In this document: piece after piece, positions 14-33,427 of the stretch | Layout: each line of letters starts with the position of its first letter | Position numbering within the stretch: position 1 is the stretch's first letter | Sequence record: PQ066597.1 | Direction: 5' to 3' (one strand) | DNA: 64,000 bases | Made by a program: the position numbers and the translations under genes | The notes under the pieces: model-generated | Seen by the model: the letters and a program-made list of their open reading frames with translations, nothing else | Told to the model about the DNA's origin: nothing | The model's database searches: none

Positions 14-439
14 TTACATACTTGCCTGAATTTTTTCGATCTTGAGTTCAAGATCAATGATCTCAGACCTCAACTCTTCACATTGAATGCGCTTCATCAG
101 AGTTACGGGTGATGGTAGCGTAGACCAGTCTTCTACATCGTCAGTGTGTTCTGAAAACTTAGAGTTACAAACAGAATATTTGTTGTGGTCGATAAAGATT
201 CCTATGTGATATCGGTGGAGTTCCATTTCCAATTCATAGTTAGCAATCCGTTCTGGATCGTAGTAATCCAACAGTTCTAGTGCTTGTTCGCGTGTAACCT
301 TTTGGAGTGGTACTTTAACTTTGTGATACACATTGTCATATCCACAAACATCCCAGATAACATAGTTTTTGCCAAATGTGTATGTTTCCACACAAGCAAC
401 CTCACCACCACACATTTCATTTAGATCTTCATAACGCAT
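14..439 (-). CDS. hypothetical protein
   Basis: Tiled minus-strand ORF with GAGG RBS; no motif recognised. Confidence 0.8.
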   Translation of the reverse strand: MRYEDLNEMCGGEVACVETYTFGKNYVIWDVCGYDNVYHKVKVPLQKVTREQALELLDYYDPERIANYELEMELHRYHIGIFIDHNKYSVCNSKFSEHTDDVEDWSTLPSPVTLMKRIQCEELRSEIIDLELKIEKIQASM

Positions 440-440
440 A

Positions 441-632
441 TCAATACCTCGGATTAATTGTTAGATGAAAATCATCACCACTACACATGTTACCATACGC
501 TTTGACTCCATCGATGTAAACAGATAAACGACCTCCGTCATAACTAATCTCAATACGTTGGAGATTTTTCACTTTTATCTCTTCTACGGAACACCCACCG
601 GATTGATAATCTTCAAAAATGATATCGCTCAT
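441..632 (-). CDS. hypothetical protein
   Basis: Tiled minus-strand ORF, ATGA overlap with upstream gene. Confidence 0.75.
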   Translation of the reverse strand: MSDIIFEDYQSGGCSVEEIKVKNLQRIEISYDGGRLSVYIDGVKAYGNMCSGDDFHLTINPRY

Positions 633-4637: not shown

Positions 4638-4775
4638 CTATTTCTCCATTTGTTCAATTAAAATACTAAGTCCAGATACAGAGTCTTCTAACAGACTAAC
4701 TTGTTCGCTCTGGAATACATCTGAGTTTACTATAGCCAAGATACCAAGTAAAGTACCTATTACCAAATATTTCAT
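4638..4775 (-). CDS. small membrane protein (45 aa, not in ORF track)
   Basis: MKYLVIGTLLGILAIV...MEK; TAATG coupling; fills gap exactly. Confidence 0.65.
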   Translation of the reverse strand: MKYLVIGTLLGILAIVNSDVFQSEQVSLLEDSVSGLSILIEQMEK

Positions 4776-5122
4776 TATTCTACACCGGTTACCGATTCAA
4801 ACTTTCCTTCTGCGATAAGGAAGGTGATCTTGTCTGAGCAATGATACACCATTTTTACGGGAACTTTACTACCAATCTTGAATTCATATTCTACACGAAC
4901 CACGCCAGAATTAAAAGGGGTTTCAACAATTTCGATTTTCCCCAGATGCTCTTTACGAAGGTCTTTCAAGGTACGGACAATATCAAACTTCAATTCGTCC
5001 GGAATGGCCGCAACCGCATCATAAAAGTCCTGTTCCTGAACTTTTCGTATCTGGCTTTTGATTACGTTGATGAACTTTTCGATTGATTTGTTGTTTACGT
5101 TATCGATACGAGATTGTTTCAT
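4775..5122 (-). CDS. hypothetical protein
   Basis: Tiled minus-strand ORF with AGGAG RBS. Confidence 0.8.
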   Translation of the reverse strand: MKQSRIDNVNNKSIEKFINVIKSQIRKVQEQDFYDAVAAIPDELKFDIVRTLKDLRKEHLGKIEIVETPFNSGVVRVEYEFKIGSKVPVKMVYHCSDKITFLIAEGKFESVTGVE

Positions 5123-5124
5123 TT

Positions 5125-5355
5125 TTAGCTCCTAGATTTAAATGTAAACATCACAGAAACATGTGGACTTCTATCGTGGGTTGGGAACATCGACCAACAT
5201 AATACATCATAACCTTTTGCCGATGCAATAGGGTATAGATCATTCAGTAAAGATTCTACCGAACTCTCGAATGCTCGATATTCGTATTTTTTCAGAGACT
5301 CAAACTCTCTTGACAATTGAACAAATGATTTTACAACAAATTTACCAGTCCACAT
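5125..5355 (-). CDS. hypothetical protein
   Basis: Tiled minus-strand ORF. Confidence 0.75.
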   Translation of the reverse strand: MWTGKFVVKSFVQLSREFESLKKYEYRAFESSVESLLNDLYPIASAKGYDVLCWSMFPTHDRSPHVSVMFTFKSRS

Positions 5356-5357
5356 AA

Positions 5358-5648
5358 TTAAACCCTCTCCAACATTGGAAGAATGAGAGTGTGTAACATA
5401 TCCATATAAGTCTGATAGTAGATGTCTTTATGGATCTCTTTTAGATATTCCATGGTGTCCCGCCCGTTGAAAGACCAGCTAACAACCGCAGCATTATCAA
5501 TCTCTCGCAACGGGTTTCCGTTGAAATTAACAATGATGAAATTCTCACTTCGTGGAACCTCGATGAGCCATTCGTTCTTCCCAGCCAATGATTTACCTTT
5601 TGAAACCACGACTTTTCGTACATCTTCATTGATAAATTGGATTTTCAT
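5358..5648 (-). CDS. hypothetical early protein
   Basis: First ORF after promoter 5673-5700; GAGG RBS. Confidence 0.8.
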   Translation of the reverse strand: MKIQFINEDVRKVVVSKGKSLAGKNEWLIEVPRSENFIIVNFNGNPLREIDNAAVVSWSFNGRDTMEYLKEIHKDIYYQTYMDMLHTLILPMLERV

Positions 5649-5672
5649 AAAACACCTCTCGTTTGAGAATTC

Positions 5673-5700
5673 ATAGTATCAGAAACAAAAATGGAGTCAA
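5673..5700 (-). promoter_or_regulatory. sigma70-like early promoter
   Basis: TTGACT-N16-TACTAT with TG extension. Confidence 0.65.
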
Positions 5701-5722
5701 GCGATTTCTCGCAAGACTCCAT
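5686..5722 (-). terminator. intrinsic terminator overlapping promoter -35
   Basis: ATGGAGTC/GACTCCAT stem (5691-5698, 5715-5722) followed by TTTTG on minus strand. Confidence 0.6.
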
Positions 5723-5726
5723 AAAA

Positions 5727-6059
5727 TTATTTCTTGAGCATACCAGTAAGTTTACTATGTGCTAGGTTAAAGCTTTGTTGTGTGTCGGACTGAGACCGTT
5801 TCCACGTAATCTTACCAAAATCCTCAATTGGGCTGATGTTAACCTTGGTAATATCTACGTTTTCTTTCACCCAACGCTTCCATTCGCCCATTTGGACTTC
5901 ATAGAAACGTTTAGCCTCGCGCATACCAGCAGTATTCATTTTTGCTTGAACACTGTTCAGAATAGAAATGTATTGATTTACAATCCGGTTATAATCTTTT
6001 GATGTTTTCATTTGAAACGATTCGTCGATTCGTTCGAAAAATTCTTTATTCTTTAACAT
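5727..6059 (-). CDS. hypothetical protein, possible internal head protein
   Basis: Start re-called at MLKNKEFFERIDES (AAGGA RBS); basic, downstream of a late-box-linked gene. Confidence 0.7.
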   Translation of the reverse strand: MLKNKEFFERIDESFQMKTSKDYNRIVNQYISILNSVQAKMNTAGMREAKRFYEVQMGEWKRWVKENVDITKVNISPIEDFGKITWKRSQSDTQQSFNLAHSKLTGMLKK

Positions 6060-6060
6060 T

Positions 6061-6936
6061 TTAGTAATCCTTCCCATACCCATAGTTTCTGGCGGCAATT
6101 GTATCATATAGATCCACATGGTGGAACTCTTTTAGTTCATCCATGGAACCATATGCGTATTTCCCGGAATCTAGACGAAGATCAATGGGAATATATTCAC
6201 CACCAATCCCAATTTTAGCCTTCTTTATATCACCGATCATCAAAGGGAAACCGGAATCATTGGAATCATCAAGAAAAATTGTACCAAACTGGGCAACCGA
6301 ACCAGTTGACCTATGAATTGGATCCTGCCAAATATCACGGCAGTATGGCTTGTGTTCATCTGGCATTTCGGAAATAGCCTTTTCTGTTACCTCGTCAAGG
6401 TCAAATACCTCAACACCGTCAATATCAGAACCGATTATATTCTTGGCTTCATTTAGCATAGTCTCGAACTCATCTTGGATCATAAGAGATTCGACGAGGG
6501 ATTCCATCATTGCGCTTTTTTGACCAGCAGCTTGTTGTTTATGAGAAATTTTACCACCGGTTCCTTTTGGGAACACAGTTACGATATTGATTTCACGACC
6601 TTTAACAGAACCAACTACGGAACGATTTTCAGATTGGGAATGGAACATATAAGTACCATTCTTAATCTTGTTTGCTTCTACGTGTTTTACCATCTTTCGA
6701 GCAAAATCTTTCCACTCTTCCGCCGTTTTAGCAGCGGCTCGCTGGTGTGCGCGAGCTTGAGCATGAACAGAACTTTGAACCTTAAACGCTCCCACCCGCA
6801 TAGAAACAGGTAGCTTTGATTGTTTGCTAAGTTCGAATTCCTGATCTTTAGTAAGTTCGACCTTTTGATTTCGGCTTTGTGCCATTTGTTCATCAAACCG
6901 GGTCAGGGTTGCGAACAAGTCTTTAGTTTTCAACAT
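6061..6936 (-). CDS. hypothetical protein with DUF4258/RelE-like (BECR) motifs; possible internal head protein
   Basis: Start re-called at MLKTKD (AAGGA RBS); SVHAQARAHQR ... INIVTVF motifs; acidic MES/LNE repeats. Confidence 0.65.
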   Translation of the reverse strand: MLKTKDLFATLTRFDEQMAQSRNQKVELTKDQEFELSKQSKLPVSMRVGAFKVQSSVHAQARAHQRAAAKTAEEWKDFARKMVKHVEANKIKNGTYMFHSQSENRSVVGSVKGREINIVTVFPKGTGGKISHKQQAAGQKSAMMESLVESLMIQDEFETMLNEAKNIIGSDIDGVEVFDLDEVTEKAISEMPDEHKPYCRDIWQDPIHRSTGSVAQFGTIFLDDSNDSGFPLMIGDIKKAKIGIGGEYIPIDLRLDSGKYAYGSMDELKEFHHVDLYDTIAARNYGYGKDY

Positions 6937-7320: not shown

Positions 7321-7707
7321 TTAAAAAAGAATTTTCACGATAGTAAAAATTATTGCGTAATGAACAAGATGGTGTGCCATTTGGTCTAACCCGAGATGAT
7401 ACCAAAAGACCGGCTCTTGGGGCGTATGACCACGGCTTAACTCTACTTTAATCTTGTCAATAAAGAAGTGTGATATAAAATCAAAAAGGGTAAGACCTAG
7501 GACAACCCATATATTCAATCCCATAATGATCGCAACGAACATTGTCATTAATGCATGTACAGTACAATGTGCAGCCAGTGGTGTAACCCAACCAACCTCT
7601 TTAAATTTCCCAAGCATATACTTACCTTGTAGAAGGTAATCTGCTGAGTAATGCTTTATTTGGTAAAACACCAATAACCCAAAAATTGTGCTAATAGGTT
7701 CAATCAT
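7321..7707 (-). CDS. DUF3307-like membrane protein
   Basis: HYSADYLLQ, HxxxH, HFFID, GLDQMAHH motifs with hydrophobic helices. Confidence 0.8.
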   Translation of the reverse strand: MIEPISTIFGLLVFYQIKHYSADYLLQGKYMLGKFKEVGWVTPLAAHCTVHALMTMFVAIIMGLNIWVVLGLTLFDFISHFFIDKIKVELSRGHTPQEPVFWYHLGLDQMAHHLVHYAIIFTIVKILF

Positions 7708-8858
7708 TTTAAAAAGTCCTTACAAACAATGTGCTCGTCAAATACTTCTGGATACCCGAGAAGGTTCGCCAGACGTTGACGACAGGCTACCACGTTAGAT
7801 TCAACTATGTCAAACCCGAATATCTGGTTAGCGATAGTTTCCTTATCATGCCCCATATCTAACCGACGTTCTGCGATACGGTATAGGATATTCCCATCAC
7901 CACACGCCGGATCACAGAATGACCCATCCCAGTTAACAACACGGTCAAGTAACATATCAGTAACCACGTCTGGGGTAAACACCTCGTGTGTGGATTTCTG
8001 GCGCTCTAAATCAAACTCAGAAGCAACTCGATTCTTATCCTCTGTGTGCGTCCCTGAATGGTATCTACCTCGCGTTTCTACGTCATAGTAGGGTAACACA
8101 CCCATATAACCACAAATCCAATCACGAATCGTTGGGAGAGGTTTGGTGAGGTCTGGGTACGGTACTGATGCTAGGGTTCCAGAATCGAGGTGTTGATTAT
8201 TCTTATACAGTGCCAAGAACACCCTAGCATAATCAGATTTGATATAATCCAAGAACTTATTAGCTTCTTCTAAAGTATCAAATCCATAGTGGTGCCATTT
8301 AAGATTTGGTTTCGTTTCAACAGAATATTCTTTTGGAACCATAGTAAAGAAATCCGCGTTAAACCTTTCACCTGCTATTGGTACGTGTCCACGGATTAAT
8401 CCAATGTTAACGAAATAGTTTCCTTCTGGATTCTGGCTATTTAAAAGGTTCTTTTGAATTGGTAGCGCTTCATATAGCTTTAAGATCTGGGTTCCGAAAT
8501 AGTTTAGTTCATCAACCTTCATCCTATTTCTGCCATTAGTCATAGGCCCATATACATCGATATACCCATCAAATGGGATACCCATTATTGTATGGGTTAT
8601 GGATAATGGAACAAACAACCCAGCAGAAAAATAAAGGTTACCATCGATTAGTTCCATCGATGTTATGTTTTCTCCAACCACACTTTTAAATTCAACCACA
8701 CGTTTCTGTTCTTTTACCGGGCGACGATTGAAAAATGGTGCAGATGGATGCACACAAATTATCTCTCTCCCAATACAACTCGCTTTGTTAAAGAAGTCTA
8801 AGTGAAGATTCCTGTTATATGGTGGATTCATTATCACGTAATCATATGACTCATTCAT
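7704..8858 (-). CDS. DNA amino-methyltransferase (m6A/m4C), circularly permuted motif order
   Basis: NPPY at residues 11-14; EVFTP, FCDPACGDG, GFDI and DFL at the C-terminus. Confidence 0.8.
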   Translation of the reverse strand: MNESYDYVIMNPPYNRNLHLDFFNKASCIGREIICVHPSAPFFNRRPVKEQKRVVEFKSVVGENITSMELIDGNLYFSAGLFVPLSITHTIMGIPFDGYIDVYGPMTNGRNRMKVDELNYFGTQILKLYEALPIQKNLLNSQNPEGNYFVNIGLIRGHVPIAGERFNADFFTMVPKEYSVETKPNLKWHHYGFDTLEEANKFLDYIKSDYARVFLALYKNNQHLDSGTLASVPYPDLTKPLPTIRDWICGYMGVLPYYDVETRGRYHSGTHTEDKNRVASEFDLERQKSTHEVFTPDVVTDMLLDRVVNWDGSFCDPACGDGNILYRIAERRLDMGHDKETIANQIFGFDIVESNVVACRQRLANLLGYPEVFDEHIVCKDFLK

Positions 8859-9114
8859 ACCGTTCGCCTATATGCCCCCATATCATAACACCATCACCAT
8901 TTCCTGTATAACAAACAAATTGACCAGCGTAAAAATGGGTTTTTGCATTTGAGCTTTCTTTTTCTATAAAAGATAAAGATTCCTCATATGTATTACCGGG
9001 TAACATCATTATTGTGCAATGGATTTCTTTGGCTCCATGTTCATGAGCCCAACATGGATACCCATCTTTTTTAATATAAAATACGGGACCACCAATTCTA
9101 TGTAGCATAAACAC
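8851..9114 (-). CDS. hypothetical protein
   Basis: Tiled minus-strand ORF. Confidence 0.7.
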   Translation of the reverse strand: MFMLHRIGGPVFYIKKDGYPCWAHEHGAKEIHCTIMMLPGNTYEESLSFIEKESSNAKTHFYAGQFVCYTGNGDGVMIWGHIGERYE

Positions 9115-9120
9115 CTCTAA

Positions 9121-9146
9121 AAAGTTAAAGGGGACCTAACGTCCCC
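9121..9146 (-). terminator. intrinsic terminator
   Basis: GGGGAC/GTCCCC stem followed by TTTAACTTT. Confidence 0.6.
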
Positions 9147-9152
9147 ATAATA

Positions 9153-9449
9153 TCATAGGCAAATAATATCTTGGTGGAAAATATCGTTTTCAACATCACG
9201 ATAAGAACGGACGTCACCAACATAATCTCGATAAAATTTAATTAGGTCTTCCAACTTACGGAAAGAACTATAAACCTCTTTTGTGAAGAACAAATTTCGT
9301 AGTGCATCATAATACACAGTATGGCTTTCCATCGCATGATATCGGTCTTCCATACCGAAATAATCTGGTTCATATACAACGGAAATAAAAGAGATCTTAC
9401 CGATTTGAATGTTTTCCAACAGTTTAAATTCGTCAAATTTAATATTCAT
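9153..9449 (-). CDS. hypothetical protein
   Basis: Tiled minus-strand ORF. Confidence 0.75.
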   Translation of the reverse strand: MNIKFDEFKLLENIQIGKISFISVVYEPDYFGMEDRYHAMESHTVYYDALRNLFFTKEVYSSFRKLEDLIKFYRDYVGDVRSYRDVENDIFHQDIICL

Positions 9450-29735: not shown

Positions 29736-31262
29736 TTACAGACCAGCCAGCGCACGAGCTTGGATGTCTTTCCAGATTTGGAAGTTAACAATCTTACCGT
29801 CACGGAAAGCAAGTTTCAATTCGCCTTGGTTGAACTCATCAGCGGTTTGGTTCTCGAAAAGAACATAATCACCATCAACCTTCTCAACCCGCAGACGACC
29901 CCGAGCGGACTTCTTACTGTTCAACGCAGTTTTCGGGTTCTTCTGCATGGAGATATCAATTCCATCAACGATGGAGTGAGTACCCTTGATTGCAATAGAG
30001 AAGCTATCGCGAGAAGCATTCTTGAGGAAACCCCAACTACCAGTACCCATCAGTACGTTGGAAACACACCAGCCAGCAGCAGCCATACCAGCATAGATCT
30101 TTTCTTGCAGTTCACCGTCAATCGCTTCACCGTAGATGATACCAACTTTCGGATTCAGAACACGGAAACCCTTCTCGTTCACAGTACCACCAAAAATATC
30201 CCACAGGATTTGCAGAGACCCTTTACGTTCGTTCTCATCTTCTGCTTCCGGGTCACCCATGATCACCTCGTAAGGAGTCTTGGGGGAACTGTCTGGGCGA
30301 ACTACAAACTTACACAGACCGTTTGAATCCGGTTGACGGGCTTCGATTTCGTCTTTCAGTGCCAGAAGGTCAACCGACAGCAGACGATAATAATCTTCAC
30401 TATCCGCAACGTAACTCAGGATCCCGGTCGGATAAGTTTCTGTGAAAAGACGGCGGAGGCTTTCACGTTCTGCATGTTCAAAACCAAGACCACGGAAGTA
30501 AGCGATACGTTGGGTTGCGGTAGCATGTTCGAAGGCGTTAACAGAACAACCAATCAGTTCCTCGTCGCTATTAGCACCGTAATAGTCTTCGATGTAATCG
30601 ATAGCCCAACCGGTGTCAGTACCAGCACTGAACAGAAGTTGACCCATACCAGAGATGGTAGCATCCTCAATACCACGATGACCCCGAGCGGCGAAACAGT
30701 GGTTAGCAATCAGAGTCCAGAAGTCGTCTGCACCAGTCATCGGAGCCCACTTATTGGAGGTCTTGCGGTATTGAGCAGATACCATAGCGGAGTTGCTCAT
30801 AGGCCATACCATCGCACTCAGGAAGGTTTCGAGGTAGTTAACCAACCAGAAGAACTCTTTCTTGGTGTTACTCACTACGAAAGCAGGGATACCCATGTTA
30901 ATCCAGTTACCCTCTTCGATTGCTCGCACTTCAATAGGCAGATAACCAAGGTCATGAAGGTCACCAATAGCCTTAATCATGGAATCGCCATGGTCTTTAC
31001 CGATGGAGTTCTTGACACGACGAGAGAACCGCTTGACTACTTTCTCTTTAGACTTACTAAAGAAGTTCTGATCCCATTGCTCCACCATGTATTGCAGGGT
31101 GTATTGCAGACCGAAGAATACCATCTTACCGTTGCCGTGAATGGTGTTAGCCAGACGGTCAGAACGAGGGGTTAGGTTGGAGATTACAAGTTCAGTACCG
31201 TTGATGTATTGATCGATGTGACCCCATTTGTAGAAGTCTACGGACATATGCGGATATTTCAT
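29736..31262 (-). CDS. nadV: nicotinamide phosphoribosyltransferase-family protein (NAMPT / Namat-like)
   Basis: DFYKxGH, FFGLQY, FAARG, GTDT, EHA, VVRPDS, GIIYGEAI, KNPKT...KKSARG motifs. Confidence 0.93.
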   Translation of the reverse strand: MKYPHMSVDFYKWGHIDQYINGTELVISNLTPRSDRLANTIHGNGKMVFFGLQYTLQYMVEQWDQNFFSKSKEKVVKRFSRRVKNSIGKDHGDSMIKAIGDLHDLGYLPIEVRAIEEGNWINMGIPAFVVSNTKKEFFWLVNYLETFLSAMVWPMSNSAMVSAQYRKTSNKWAPMTGADDFWTLIANHCFAARGHRGIEDATISGMGQLLFSAGTDTGWAIDYIEDYYGANSDEELIGCSVNAFEHATATQRIAYFRGLGFEHAERESLRRLFTETYPTGILSYVADSEDYYRLLSVDLLALKDEIEARQPDSNGLCKFVVRPDSSPKTPYEVIMGDPEAEDENERKGSLQILWDIFGGTVNEKGFRVLNPKVGIIYGEAIDGELQEKIYAGMAAAGWCVSNVLMGTGSWGFLKNASRDSFSIAIKGTHSIVDGIDISMQKNPKTALNSKKSARGRLRVEKVDGDYVLFENQTADEFNQGELKLAFRDGKIVNFQIWKDIQARALAGL

Positions 31263-31278
31263 TTTCTCATTTTCCTTA

Positions 31279-31821
31279 TTACATAATTTGGGTAAAGTAT
31301 TTTTCTAACGTATCTTTTCTCATAGAATACGTTGTTTCTGTTTTAACGTCAACAAAATTTACAGAACCATCATCACAAATTTTACAAACCTGCCCATCCA
31401 TCACAAAATTATCAATCGCAGTAAGCCAACCGATGTTTCGATGGTCTCTCATAAATTCGACCCGATGTCTATCTGATTTGTAGTATATCGAGGTCACGTT
31501 AGGTTTAAAAGTAAATTTTTTGCGGTATTCATTGATGATTTTTGGGGTATCTTCAAATCCTACCATTCTGGTGAATTTACTAACAGGTTCCTCTTCAAAC
31601 TGTTGAATATACTCTACCACACTATCGAAGGAAAACAAAACTATTTTTTCGGACGAATAGCGATTTTTTATTAAAACAAAAATATCATCTTTATAGTCAA
31701 CCACATAGTTACTTGACATGGTAAACCGATCCAGCCGACAACGGAGTTCCGCATAATCAGAAACATCCCCGTCGGCGTTTTCTACAACATAAGGAATATT
31801 GTCAATAAAATAAATTCTCAT
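31279..31821 (-). CDS. hypothetical protein
   Basis: Tiled minus-strand ORF. Confidence 0.8.
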   Translation of the reverse strand: MRIYFIDNIPYVVENADGDVSDYAELRCRLDRFTMSSNYVVDYKDDIFVLIKNRYSSEKIVLFSFDSVVEYIQQFEEEPVSKFTRMVGFEDTPKIINEYRKKFTFKPNVTSIYYKSDRHRVEFMRDHRNIGWLTAIDNFVMDGQVCKICDDGSVNFVDVKTETTYSMRKDTLEKYFTQIM

Positions 31822-32009
31822 AACACCAACCTTGTTCTTTGAACAACCAGATCACCACCTTCCTTAAACTCTAAGTTTACAAGAATGCAATCACCTTCAT
31901 CTTTGTAAGAATGTACCACCAAATCGGATAGATTATATCCAATATTTTCGAGCGTAATGTCGATTATTTTTGTCATAACCCGTCCGGGGGTTTGCCATTT
32001 ATTCATCAA
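31818..32009 (-). CDS. hypothetical protein
   Basis: Tiled ORF, ATGA overlaps. Confidence 0.75.
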   Translation of the reverse strand: MMNKWQTPGRVMTKIIDITLENIGYNLSDLVVHSYKDEGDCILVNLEFKEGGDLVVQRTRLVL

Positions 32010-32443
32010 AATTTGTTCCCCTCATAGTCAATACGAAGAGATTCACTTTTTCCGAACTTTCGTTCGCCGCAAATAAACCCAGCCCGTTTAGCTCGACAAC
32101 TACCGAGGCTACTACCAAGCCGCCGTTTATGAATGATACGTCCAATAAATTCATCCATATGATCATGGTTTACCAGCTTAGAGAAAACTACGGTCAAAAC
32201 TTTACCATCTTTAAGATCATACTCGATGAATTTATAATCACCGATTGTATCACGACCAGTATCAATGATCTCGATATCATTTTCTTCCGAACGGAACCAG
32301 TCATGATATCGGTCAAACATCCGGATTTGGTGTACCTTTTTCACTTCGTCCATTGGAATTTCACCAATGATCTTGATAGTGATAGGTTGATATGATTCGT
32401 GACAGTCTTCTTTCTTCAATACATATGTAATTGAATTAATCAT
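32006..32443 (-). CDS. hypothetical protein
   Basis: Tiled ORF, ATGA overlaps. Confidence 0.8.
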   Translation of the reverse strand: MINSITYVLKKEDCHESYQPITIKIIGEIPMDEVKKVHQIRMFDRYHDWFRSEENDIEIIDTGRDTIGDYKFIEYDLKDGKVLTVVFSKLVNHDHMDEFIGRIIHKRRLGSSLGSCRAKRAGFICGERKFGKSESLRIDYEGNKF

Positions 32444-32619
32444 TTCTTTTCTCCAAAACAGAGAGTACCGATAGCCAGATTATGAACAAGATTCTTGATC
32501 CCTTCTTCGTTCATCCCATTCGCCTTTTCTCGCATCAACATTTCCTGAACAGATTGGTTAGCCAGAAGTTCATCGATACGGGAGTTAATGATTTGGGTCA
32601 TAGTTTCGATACTCATCAT
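32440..32619 (-). CDS. hypothetical protein
   Basis: Start re-called at MMSIET (AAGGA RBS). Confidence 0.7.
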   Translation of the reverse strand: MMSIETMTQIINSRIDELLANQSVQEMLMREKANGMNEEGIKNLVHNLAIGTLCFGEKK

Positions 32620-32629
32620 GTTTAGTTCC

Positions 32630-33427
32630 TTATTTTGTCCAGTCGAAACGAGTATATACGTTGTCGATGTACTGTGCAAGGTTTTCTTTGGCGTTGTAAG
32701 AAAAAATTCCATGGGTAACAAACAGGTCCACTCGAACCGCACCAGACTCTTTCAATACTTTACCAAGATTTAGGAAAGAACGACCACCATCACAAATATC
32801 GTCTACGATCAACAACCGCTTACCTTTGACGTCAGCATTGAAACGAGGTTCGCTAACTTCACCAGTGTTGATGTCACGAGTCTTCATGGCTTCAATTACA
32901 GGTAGTCCCGCACTTTGAGCTTGAGGATAAATCTTTTTCAGAGCACCTGCATCCGGGGATACGATTGCGTCATAATTATGACGGGAAATCCCTTGAGAAC
33001 CCCAACACCACTGTTTGTTAACAGATACGTTATTGATCAATGCGGTTGCTACATCGGAATGTGGGTCTGTGAGACAAACCAAATCATATTTCATAGAGTT
33101 GATGAAATCACAAAAGACACGCAAAGACAGGCTTTCACCTTCTGTCATAACTCGGTCTTGTCGAGCATAAGGGAGATAGGAAAGGTCCAAAACGTATCGC
33201 ACACCAGTCCCGAAGAATCGGTGAAGTGCATCCGTAAGGATCGCCAGTTTCATGATATCGCCATCGTGGATACTTGCATCAACACGAACAGTTTCTGTCT
33301 CATAAGACCCATATTCAATAACATCTTTTGGAAGTTTGACGTTCCATTCCCCACCGGCAAACTGTTTAAAATCAACAATTGCATTACTGATATTGAAGTC
33401 TTTATAAGTAACAAACAATTTATACAT
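32630..33427 (-). CDS. prs: ribose-phosphate pyrophosphokinase-family protein (Prs / Adps-like)
   Basis: FAGGE, YLPYARQDR, DPHS, VSPDAGA, KTRD, IVDDICDGGRSF, VTHGIFS motifs. Confidence 0.93.
   Translation of the reverse strand: MYKLFVTYKDFNISNAIVDFKQFAGGEWNVKLPKDVIEYGSYETETVRVDASIHDGDIMKLAILTDALHRFFGTGVRYVLDLSYLPYARQDRVMTEGESLSLRVFCDFINSMKYDLVCLTDPHSDVATALINNVSVNKQWCWGSQGISRHNYDAIVSPDAGALKKIYPQAQSAGLPVIEAMKTRDINTGEVSEPRFNADVKGKRLLIVDDICDGGRSFLNLGKVLKESGAVRVDLFVTHGIFSYNAKENLAQYIDNVYTRFDWTK

Follow-up and report, generated by a model that had tools for sequence, protein, structure and literature searches.

Circular permutation among the alpha, beta and gamma classes of DNA methyltransferases (MTases) has been a textbook example for decades, and the events behind it are ancient; whether such permutations proceed by duplication-truncation, "cut and paste" or fission-fusion has been debated mainly on the basis of models and laboratory constructs. 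In this work, we analyzed an MTase gene located at positions 7704..8858 of a 64,000-nucleotide (nt) window, which comprises bases 1-64000 of the genome of the T4-like Aeromonas phage vB_AdhaM_G2 (PQ066597.1; 229.6 kb). The product of this gene is gamma-type by sequence (class A: M.TaqI, CamA, M.BseCI, HsdM-like) and beta-like by chain order. Probably, it is an intact gamma-type enzyme, predicted to be active and permuted at the beta3/beta4 junction, which was made by fusion of split genes.

The three classes are defined by the order of motif I, motif IV and the recognition domain: alpha, I-recognition domain-IV; beta, IV-recognition domain-I; and gamma, I-IV-recognition domain (PMC7544214). 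Class A has been associated with an N-P-P-(Y) motif IV, and the latest topology scheme ties profile group I and NPPY to this single topology, infers monophyly of the classes, and includes permuted relatives for the other two profile groups and none for group I (bioRxiv 10.1101/2023.12.13.571470). That scheme has no slot for an enzyme with a class A profile in which the catalytic motif precedes the S-adenosylmethionine (SAM) motif. The MTase of the window shares with the gamma class (M.TaqI, CamA, M.BseCI; PF02384/Eco57I PF07669) the NPPY motif, the FTP of motif X and a D/E-P-x-C-G-x-G motif I; its SAM half matches M.BseCI and PF02384, and its catalytic half and recognition domain superpose on residues 95-413 of M.TaqI and 155-577 of CamA. 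In contrast to that class, to which its closest non-permuted homologs conform, the chain runs from motif IV to motif III, with the SAM half after the recognition domain. With the beta class (M.PvuII, M.RsrI, M.MboIIA, CcrM, EcoP15I Mod; PF01555), whose members are thought to act as homo- or heterodimers (PMC7544214), it shares the linear order and a colinear core in structural alignments. However, there is no detectable sequence relationship to beta-class enzymes, motif IV is NPPY, the recognition domain is M.TaqI/CamA-like, and the origin appears to be separate and recent, within a gamma-type family.

Circular permutation inside an otherwise uniform family has been described for the C5-MTases M.BssHII, M.Alw26I and M2.Eco31I (zeta/class F), and laboratory-permuted M.SssI, M.MpeI and M.HaeIII are further circularly permuted DNA MTase folds; such C5-MTase variants can retain activity (PMC5944983). 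Those enzymes modify cytosine C5 and are cut between motif VIII and the recognition domain, whereas the MTase of the window is an amino-MTase cut between motifs III and IV, with natural split intermediates extant. Encoding of an MTase as two polypeptides also has a precedent in M.AquI, a naturally split enzyme whose alpha and beta subunits complement each other (as cited in PMC5944983); in M.AquI, a C5 enzyme, the division falls between motif VIII and the recognition domain, whereas in the relatives reported here it falls inside the Rossmann sheet, at beta3/beta4. A criterion for fission and fusion is that related genomes contain each half as an independent gene, with fusions of the two in more than one order; the nicotinamide nucleotide transhydrogenases are an example, with half genes joined differently from lineage to lineage (PMC3320104). 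In the transhydrogenases whole domains or subunits are rearranged, whereas in the MTase of the window the chain is broken within one catalytic domain. A literature search for a permuted or beta3/beta4-split gamma-type MTase, or for the Aeromonas phage protein, found nothing relevant in a coverage that was incomplete and did not include REBASE.

Motif Order and Gamma-Type Affinity

A preliminary description of the gene, made from its sequence, had placed motifs IV-VIII first, followed by a region of the size of a target recognition domain and by motifs X-I-II-III. This order was borne out by Pfam, by matches to M.BseCI and by the invariant columns of the family alignment (Table 1). The Pfam profile N6_Mtase (PF02384) matched amino acids (aa) 282-360 with its positions 17-94 of 311 (E 3e-7, over the gathering score), and Eco57I matched aa 2-20, the NPPY region, with its positions 72-90. 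In M.BseCI (7qw5), chain residues 10-85 were matched by aa 284-355, and chain residues 126-139 by aa 4-17. The linear order is that of the beta class (IV-VIII, recognition domain, X-I-II-III) and not that of the gamma class (X-I-II-III, IV-VIII, recognition domain): the product of 7704..8858 is circularly permuted at the beta3/beta4 (motif III/IV) junction. In the structural model described below, the strands of the catalytic half were found at aa 5-10, 30-38, 65-71, and 85-91, and this half (aa 1-95) aligned from residue 95 of M.TaqI and from residue 155 of CamA. Strand beta1 was found at aa 314-316 in the motif I region, and the acidic position of motif II was D or E throughout the family alignment.

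The sequence was then rotated in silico, by placing aa 268-384 ahead of aa 1-267, and compared by BLAST with 10 gamma-order relatives. With each of these relatives the native protein gave two high-scoring segment pairs (HSPs) in swapped order, and the rotated protein gave one colinear HSP across the junction (E 1e-27 to 3e-42). In the case of relative P0024, identity was 33% over 361 columns (E 2.7e-42) with a lone 2-residue gap at FLK/MNE, where ...CKDFLK/MNESYDYVIMNPPY was aligned to ...CRNTLLAPEYFTYDLIIMNPPY. The motif III segment led directly into YDYVIMNPPY, like in the gamma-order relatives, which match PF02384 contiguously over the motif III/IV junction. The conversion of two swapped HSPs into one reinforced the earlier proposal that joining the C-terminus to the N-terminus recreates the gamma junction, and the alignments argue for common ancestry of the protein with gamma-order enzymes. 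When the PDB was searched with the family profile, only gamma/Type-I-like chains were retrieved (M.BseCI, E 1.5e-5; PacII M; HsdM).

Table 1. Position of the MTase gene, its parts and its neighbors in the window.
Feature	Position	Strand	Remarks
MTase gene, whole coding sequence	7704..8858	(-)	384 aa; ATG start; stop codon 7704-7706 (TGA); phrog_11371 matched over the full length (PHROGs), function there listed as unknown
Catalytic half of the Rossmann fold, aa 1-95	8574..8858	(-)	beta4-beta7, motifs IV-VIII
Motif IV, NPPY, aa 11-14	8817..8828	(-)	N11-P12-P13-Y14; catalytic loop; invariant in the 14-member alignment
Target-recognition-type domain, aa about 96-240	8139..8573	(-)	structural match to M.TaqI and CamA
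Relic of the usual C-terminal tail of the family, aa 241-259	8082..8138	(-)	ends in GVLPYY
Fusion linker, aa 260-285	8004..8081	(-)	read as former intergenic join plus N-terminal leader of the SAM-half gene
SAM-binding half, aa 286-384	7707..8003	(-)	motif X helix, beta1-beta3, motifs I-III
Motif X, EVFTP, aa 292-296	7971..7985	(-)	E292, F294, T295, P296 invariant
Motif I, DPACGDG, aa 316-322	7893..7913	(-)	SAM-binding loop after beta1; P317, C319, G320, D321, G322 invariant
Motif II, GFDI, aa 348-351	7806..7817	(-)	acidic D350 at the tip of beta2; strand aa 346-350
Motif III, HIVCKDFLK, aa 376-384	7707..7733	(-)	beta3 (strand aa 377-379); chain stops before the usual beta4
Upstream neighbor	8851..9114	(-)	87 aa; unknown function; stop overlaps the MTase start by 8 nt
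Downstream neighbor	7321..7707	(-)	128-aa DUF3307 multi-pass membrane protein; Pfam PF11750, E 8e-10

Predicted Structure

A first AlphaFold model, generated from a shallow alignment of 14 rows, had a predicted local distance difference test (pLDDT) score of 70 and gave weak Foldseek scores; it was replaced by a second model from a block alignment of 137 rows containing full-length members and segments of each half. The second model reached a pLDDT of 93.4 and a predicted template modeling score (pTM) of 0.91, its only weak stretch being at aa about 260-290 (block pLDDT 59-76). Both halves are predicted to pack into one ordinary Rossmann-type MTase fold. In Foldseek, CamA and M.TaqI ranked first with probability 1.0. 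Alignment with VIA-align superposed model residues 1..240 on residues 95..413 of M.TaqI (206 residues, Z 9.5) and 155..572 of CamA (213 residues, Z 9.9), with the C-terminal recognition domain included in both cases. Overall, the alignments to these two enzymes covered 203-224 residues, were confined to model residues 1..240-247 (155..572-577 in CamA) and had Z scores of 8.8-9.9; the recognition domain lies directly after the catalytic half in the model, M.TaqI-like. The C-terminal part alone (aa 277-384) aligned to the SAM halves at the N-termini of BsaXI (Z 9.8) and EcoR124I HsdM (root-mean-square deviation 2.2). AlphaFold DB matches to the catalytic half plus recognition domain were labeled as site-specific DNA adenine MTases or M.TaqI-like, and no full-length colinear match to the model was found among the cellular AlphaFold clusters.

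Split Relatives and Proposed Origin by Gene Fusion

Relatives were collected by an exhaustive profile search over 1.84 billion representatives, which yielded 4757 proteins (184 below 1e-30), and the best 149 cluster representatives were classified with separate hidden Markov models (HMMs) for each half. Four of the 149 were permuted, 37 were clearly of gamma order, 63 had the NPPY module after a divergent N-region, and 44 were short proteins starting at NPPY. In eight of nine sampled non-fused loci, a SAM-half gene adjoined a separate catalytic gene, and both gene orders were observed. The catalytic gene came first in L005 (Vibrio phage PVA23, 4-nt overlap), L068 (abutting), L069 (105-nt gap), L075/76 (overlapping), and L062 (one gene between); the SAM-half gene was upstream in L063 (4-nt overlap), L074 (5-nt gap), and L078. 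The two marks of fission and fusion mentioned above were therefore found in this family, as related genomes carry each half as a gene of its own (the 44 proteins starting at NPPY and the eight adjacent pairs), and both orders of fusion exist among the homologs (37 gamma-order and four permuted clusters). The separate halves would work as a two-chain enzyme, and a natural beta3/beta4 split could inform the design of split-methyltransferase tools.

The fused proteins retain a trace of this arrangement. Catalytic-half proteins, both stand-alone (for example, P0013, P0015, P0080, and P0071) and gamma-order, terminate in a conserved ...IPDYY-stop, and this tail is kept internally in the fused proteins (GVLPYY at aa 254-259 of the window MTase, VIEDYY in Aeh1, LLPDYH in P0027). 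The distance from the tail to motif X in the fused proteins is 34-38 aa, and stand-alone SAM-half open reading frames (ORFs) have 27-36 aa from the initial Met to motif X. By hhalign, aa 272-384 of the query aligned to residues 3-138 of a stand-alone Vibrio phage ORF with a probability of 99.6%. An internal tail followed by a linker of leader length is what an end-to-start gene fusion leaves behind, and the place of the join is also the sole low-confidence part of the AlphaFold model.

Based on these features, the preferred scenario starts from a phage lineage in which the MTase would have been encoded by two neighboring genes, one for the catalytic half with the recognition domain and a small one for the SAM half. 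The former would have lost its stop and become joined end-to-start to a SAM-half gene downstream of it, and the outcome would be a beta-type order independent of the classical beta class. A permutation by duplication, in which tandem gamma-order copies were fused in frame and the first SAM half and the last catalytic half were then lost, would lead to the same order. That is the model traditionally applied to DNA MTases (Jeltsch 1999, as summarized in PMC3320104), and it too predicts a scar at which one unit runs end-to-start into the following one. The gene order would likewise be swapped if a pair that was already split underwent tandem duplication. Complete gamma-order enzymes with an extra downstream SAM-half ORF exist at several loci (L018/L022), and the long forms P0014 and PVA23_329, with extra sequence ahead of NPPY, could be partly trimmed duplicates. 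However, no tandem full-length duplicate occurred among the best 149 relatives, any resemblance of the regions ahead of NPPY in the long forms to the SAM half was not significant (hhalign probability below 1%), and the halves are independent genes in both orders in the closest relatives, in agreement with the criterion of PMC3320104 for fission and fusion. Duplication is, on balance, the less likely route, and fusion of two neighboring genes is preferred. The possibility that the long forms (P0014, PVA23_329, and S-CAM7) keep a degenerate original SAM half was also considered, and it was unsupported at the same hhalign probability.

Whether these loci represent a whole phage family of natural two-gene gamma-type MTases, with the Rossmann fold cut at beta3/beta4 and the genes fused repeatedly and independently in either order, so that fission and fusion would generate the beta chain order again and again, is a proposal whose chances we judge to be about even. 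If true, the classical beta class could have originated likewise, and chain topology would be unreliable as a marker of common descent for MTase classes.

Several relatives showed additional features. In Vibrio phage PVA23 (L005:849-3903; also in phi-ST2), the catalytic-half protein bears an N-terminal GIY-YIG (LEM-3-like) nuclease domain (E 6e-16), and the split pair is directly upstream of queD- and queC-like 7-deazaguanine synthesis genes. Many gut-type viral contigs (L024-L059; for example, L030:4004-4759, 4746-6308) contain a SAM-half-like ORF of 211-260 aa with an extension and without NPPY, immediately upstream of and overlapping a 505-540 aa gamma-order MTase that is complete in itself, having motifs X and I and, at about aa 190, NPPY. 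Proteins of 893-1288 aa in L018/L022 (412-3120, 3842-4378), L013, L014, and L020 contain a complete gamma-order MTase copy at the C-terminus, some of them with a ResIII helicase domain, and are followed by a separate small SAM-half ORF. In Synechococcus phage S-CAM7 (L004:2075-5274), the motif I of a gamma-order relative looks degenerate (..LFDAGCILA..); after the gene of this relative come, in turn, a DEAD-like helicase gene and a stand-alone SAM-half ORF (4873-5274, E 7e-13). Finally, in the gamma-order P0011 (624 aa, ENA metagenome) a segment of the recognition domain, REVFNIDDITLHGKDWDPTVKEFM.., is present twice, which reflects a genuine partial duplication or else a chimeric assembly.

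Recurrence of the Fusion

Phylogenetic analysis of the catalytic module was carried out on 163 rows, with approximately unbiased (AU) tests on a 52-row subset; trees were unrooted. One clade of the catalytic-module tree (Shimodaira-Hasegawa-like approximate likelihood ratio test, SH-aLRT, 94-99) contained both permuted groups of Aeromonas phages together with split (P0013, P0016) and long (P0014, P0015, P0017) relatives. In agreement with it, a clade of SAM halves (98) grouped the fused halves of the Aeh1 group with five stand-alone SAM halves that partner catalytic genes of the same clade. Since the SAM-half clade mirrors the catalytic-module clade, the halves evolved as a pair. P0027 (a phage-like 32-kb contig, L064) and P0056 (L066) were placed elsewhere, on long branches. 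A single clade of all permuted forms was rejected by the AU test (p-AU 0.0057), and the two Aeromonas groups as one clade were compatible with the data (p = 0.74).

A 476-aa viral protein (L026:2993-4423) was found with NPPF at aa 9 and an Eco57I-like catalytic module that the family HMM had missed; its C-terminal part is a SAM half of the same kind (aa 338-463), and it represents a further independent permuted fusion. Because the AU test rejects one permuted clade and L026 has a different catalytic module, fusion must have happened on two or more occasions, probably on three or four. Beta-type order has arisen no fewer than two further times, within a gamma-type family. The permutation is recent here: related phages still carry intact, split (in either gene order) and fused versions, and the scar is readable, so that the route of permutation can be tested with natural sequences.

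Some observations speak against the explanation preferred here (one ordinary MTase fold, made by fusion of split genes), or against parts of it. Most rows of the alignment used for modeling span only one half; how the halves pack is therefore derived from 17 full-length rows and the priors of the predictor. One of the nine sampled loci (L077) has no SAM-half gene within 3 kb, and some of the short catalytic-only proteins counted above could be metagenomic genes that were called incompletely. Unrooted trees do not fix the direction of events (fusion vs later fission), and the Aeromonas-type clade could fit either two fusions or one fusion and a later fission.

Predicted Function

Judging from its motifs, the product of 7704..8858 is an intact SAM-dependent amino-MTase that is most likely active. 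As the conserved motifs are intact and its recognition domain can be superposed on that of DNA adenine MTases, its most likely activity is that of a DNA N6-adenine MTase (EC 2.1.1.72). No nuclease partner was present among the neighbors of the gene in the window, so it would be an orphan enzyme. Plausibly, it protects phage DNA from host restriction; this role can be set beside the location in a lytic T4-like early region, the lack of a nearby nuclease partner and the strong purifying selection described below.

Enzymes of the NPPY type include RNA N2-methylguanosine/N6-methyladenosine (m2G/m6A) and protein glutamine methyltransferases. The substrate of the permuted MTase could then be other than DNA adenine, namely RNA, cytosine N4 or the precursor of a hypermodified base. 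Parts of the SAM half and the NPPY region weakly resemble the RNA m2G/m6A MTases Trm14, aTrm11, and METTL5, one gamma-order relative is named "predicted RNA methylase" in one source (an automatic label), and the split pair of phage PVA23 adjoins the 7-deazaguanine genes mentioned above. However, the best sequence and fold matches are DNA adenine MTases, the structural match runs through the DNA-recognition domains of M.TaqI and CamA, the AlphaFold DB labels are those of DNA adenine enzymes, and no deazaguanine genes adjoin the MTase gene in the window. These results make such a substrate improbable and favor DNA adenine.

Comparison With the Beta Class

The cores of beta-class enzymes were colinear with the model over residues 1..365-381, with the highest Z scores obtained (10.1-10.6). 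These enzymes were M.MboIIA, M.BceJIV, M1.HpyAVI, CcrM, EcoP15I Mod, M.RsrI, and M.PvuII (PDB entries among them: 1g60, 9c3s, 6pbd, 1eg2, and 1boo). Since beta-class enzymes were colinear over both halves, and M.TaqI and CamA over residues 1-240 only, the chain is connected as in the beta class but built from gamma-like parts. The linear order and these scores would be compatible with an ordinary beta-class MTase that is gamma-like by chance only. However, the beta-class alignments were confined to 138-183 core residues and left out the recognition domain, Pfam gave no match to PF01555 even at E <= 1, and no beta-class chain appeared at E <= 1 in the PDB search with the family profile. Moreover, motif IV is NPPY instead of the beta-type (D/S)PP(Y/F), motif I is DPACGDG instead of the FxGxG type, and the nearest relatives outside the permuted group, like all close relatives, are gamma-order or split proteins. 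An ordinary beta-class enzyme is, on this evidence, highly improbable. The preliminary description had proposed an independent permutation giving beta order with gamma sequence, and had named best matches to ordinary beta-class MTases as the finding that would speak against it; the lack of PF01555, the gamma-order or split relatives and the match of the model to M.TaqI and CamA uphold that proposal.

Conservation and Selection

The gene was present as an uninterrupted ORF in 31 phage genome records from independent isolates, 13 of them at >= 95% identity. These records form two groups: phage 65/CC2/AS-zj, 74-100% identical to the query, and Aeh1/phiAS5/PX29, 36-38% identical. In a family alignment of 14 members, NPPY, the FTP of motif X and the PxCGDG of motif I were invariant down to 35% identity. 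The ratio of nonsynonymous to synonymous substitutions (dN/dS) between the window and phage CC2 was 0.056 over the catalytic half together with the recognition domain, compared with 0.023 over the SAM half, and both halves are under strong purifying selection. Given the invariant motifs, the low dN/dS and the conserved architecture, the gene is functional and not an assembly artefact. Misassembly (a reservation already raised in the preliminary description), two genes misread as one or a decaying pseudogene have a negligible probability as causes of the motif order: the phage 65 GenBank record, frame-shifted over about 40 codons in the tail/linker, indicates that errors or indels do happen there, but the ORF is intact in all 31 genomes, in two groups merely 36-38% identical to each other, with dN/dS of 0.02-0.06 and all catalytic and SAM-binding motifs invariant.

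In that record (GU459069/NC_015251, L008:4680-4900; homolog of window 8000-8170), the tail/linker (..ELPTMREWISKYMGVLPYYDSESRGSYHSGSHNEDKNRT..) is readable in another frame only, and the annotated frame gives unrelated residues, as a result of a compensated double frameshift or of sequencing errors. The 65.2 record is closer to the query than the phage 65 record (81.5% vs 74.4% identity).

A scan of viral contigs detected the full-length permuted form in Aeromonas phages only, and 49 loci with the SAM half only, many of which are small stand-alone ORFs. The MTase ORF is unchanged in the full record PQ066597.1, where its label is "adenine-specific DNA methylase"; in most other records it is labeled "hypothetical protein". 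As these proteins and half-genes are mostly annotated as hypothetical, surveys of phage methylomes and anti-restriction functions will miss them.

Gene Neighborhood

The surroundings of the MTase gene correspond to a T4-type early block, entirely on the (-) strand, with rIIA/B, topoisomerase, td, frd, cd, denA, RNA ligase, and polynucleotide kinase (PNK) genes. Both ends of the MTase gene overlap neighboring genes, upstream by 8 nt and downstream by 4 nt, where the sequence reads ATGA and the ATG of the DUF3307 gene shares bases with the MTase TGA. These overlaps leave no space for missing ends of the MTase, and truncation is unlikely, as had been anticipated. A Pfam search of the 87-aa upstream neighbor gave zero matches. 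Scans around the MTase gene detected 17 promoter-like sites (13.3 +/- 3.7 expected) and four terminator-like sites (2.7 +/- 1.5 expected), both at chance level. A terminator-like hairpin (GGGGAC-GTTAG-GTCCCC, with a T-rich tail after it) was located at 9130-9146 (-), between the ORF 9153-9449 and the ORF 8851-9114. Because this hairpin precedes them, the 87-aa ORF, the MTase gene and the DUF3307 gene may form one transcription unit, such signals being overall at chance level. The DUF3307 gene is translationally coupled to the MTase gene, and no link of DUF3307 to methylation is known. Farther along the early region, at window positions 29736-33427 (-), the GenBank annotation lists nicotinamide phosphoribosyltransferase and ribose-phosphate pyrophosphokinase genes, corresponding to salvage of nicotinamide adenine dinucleotide (NAD).

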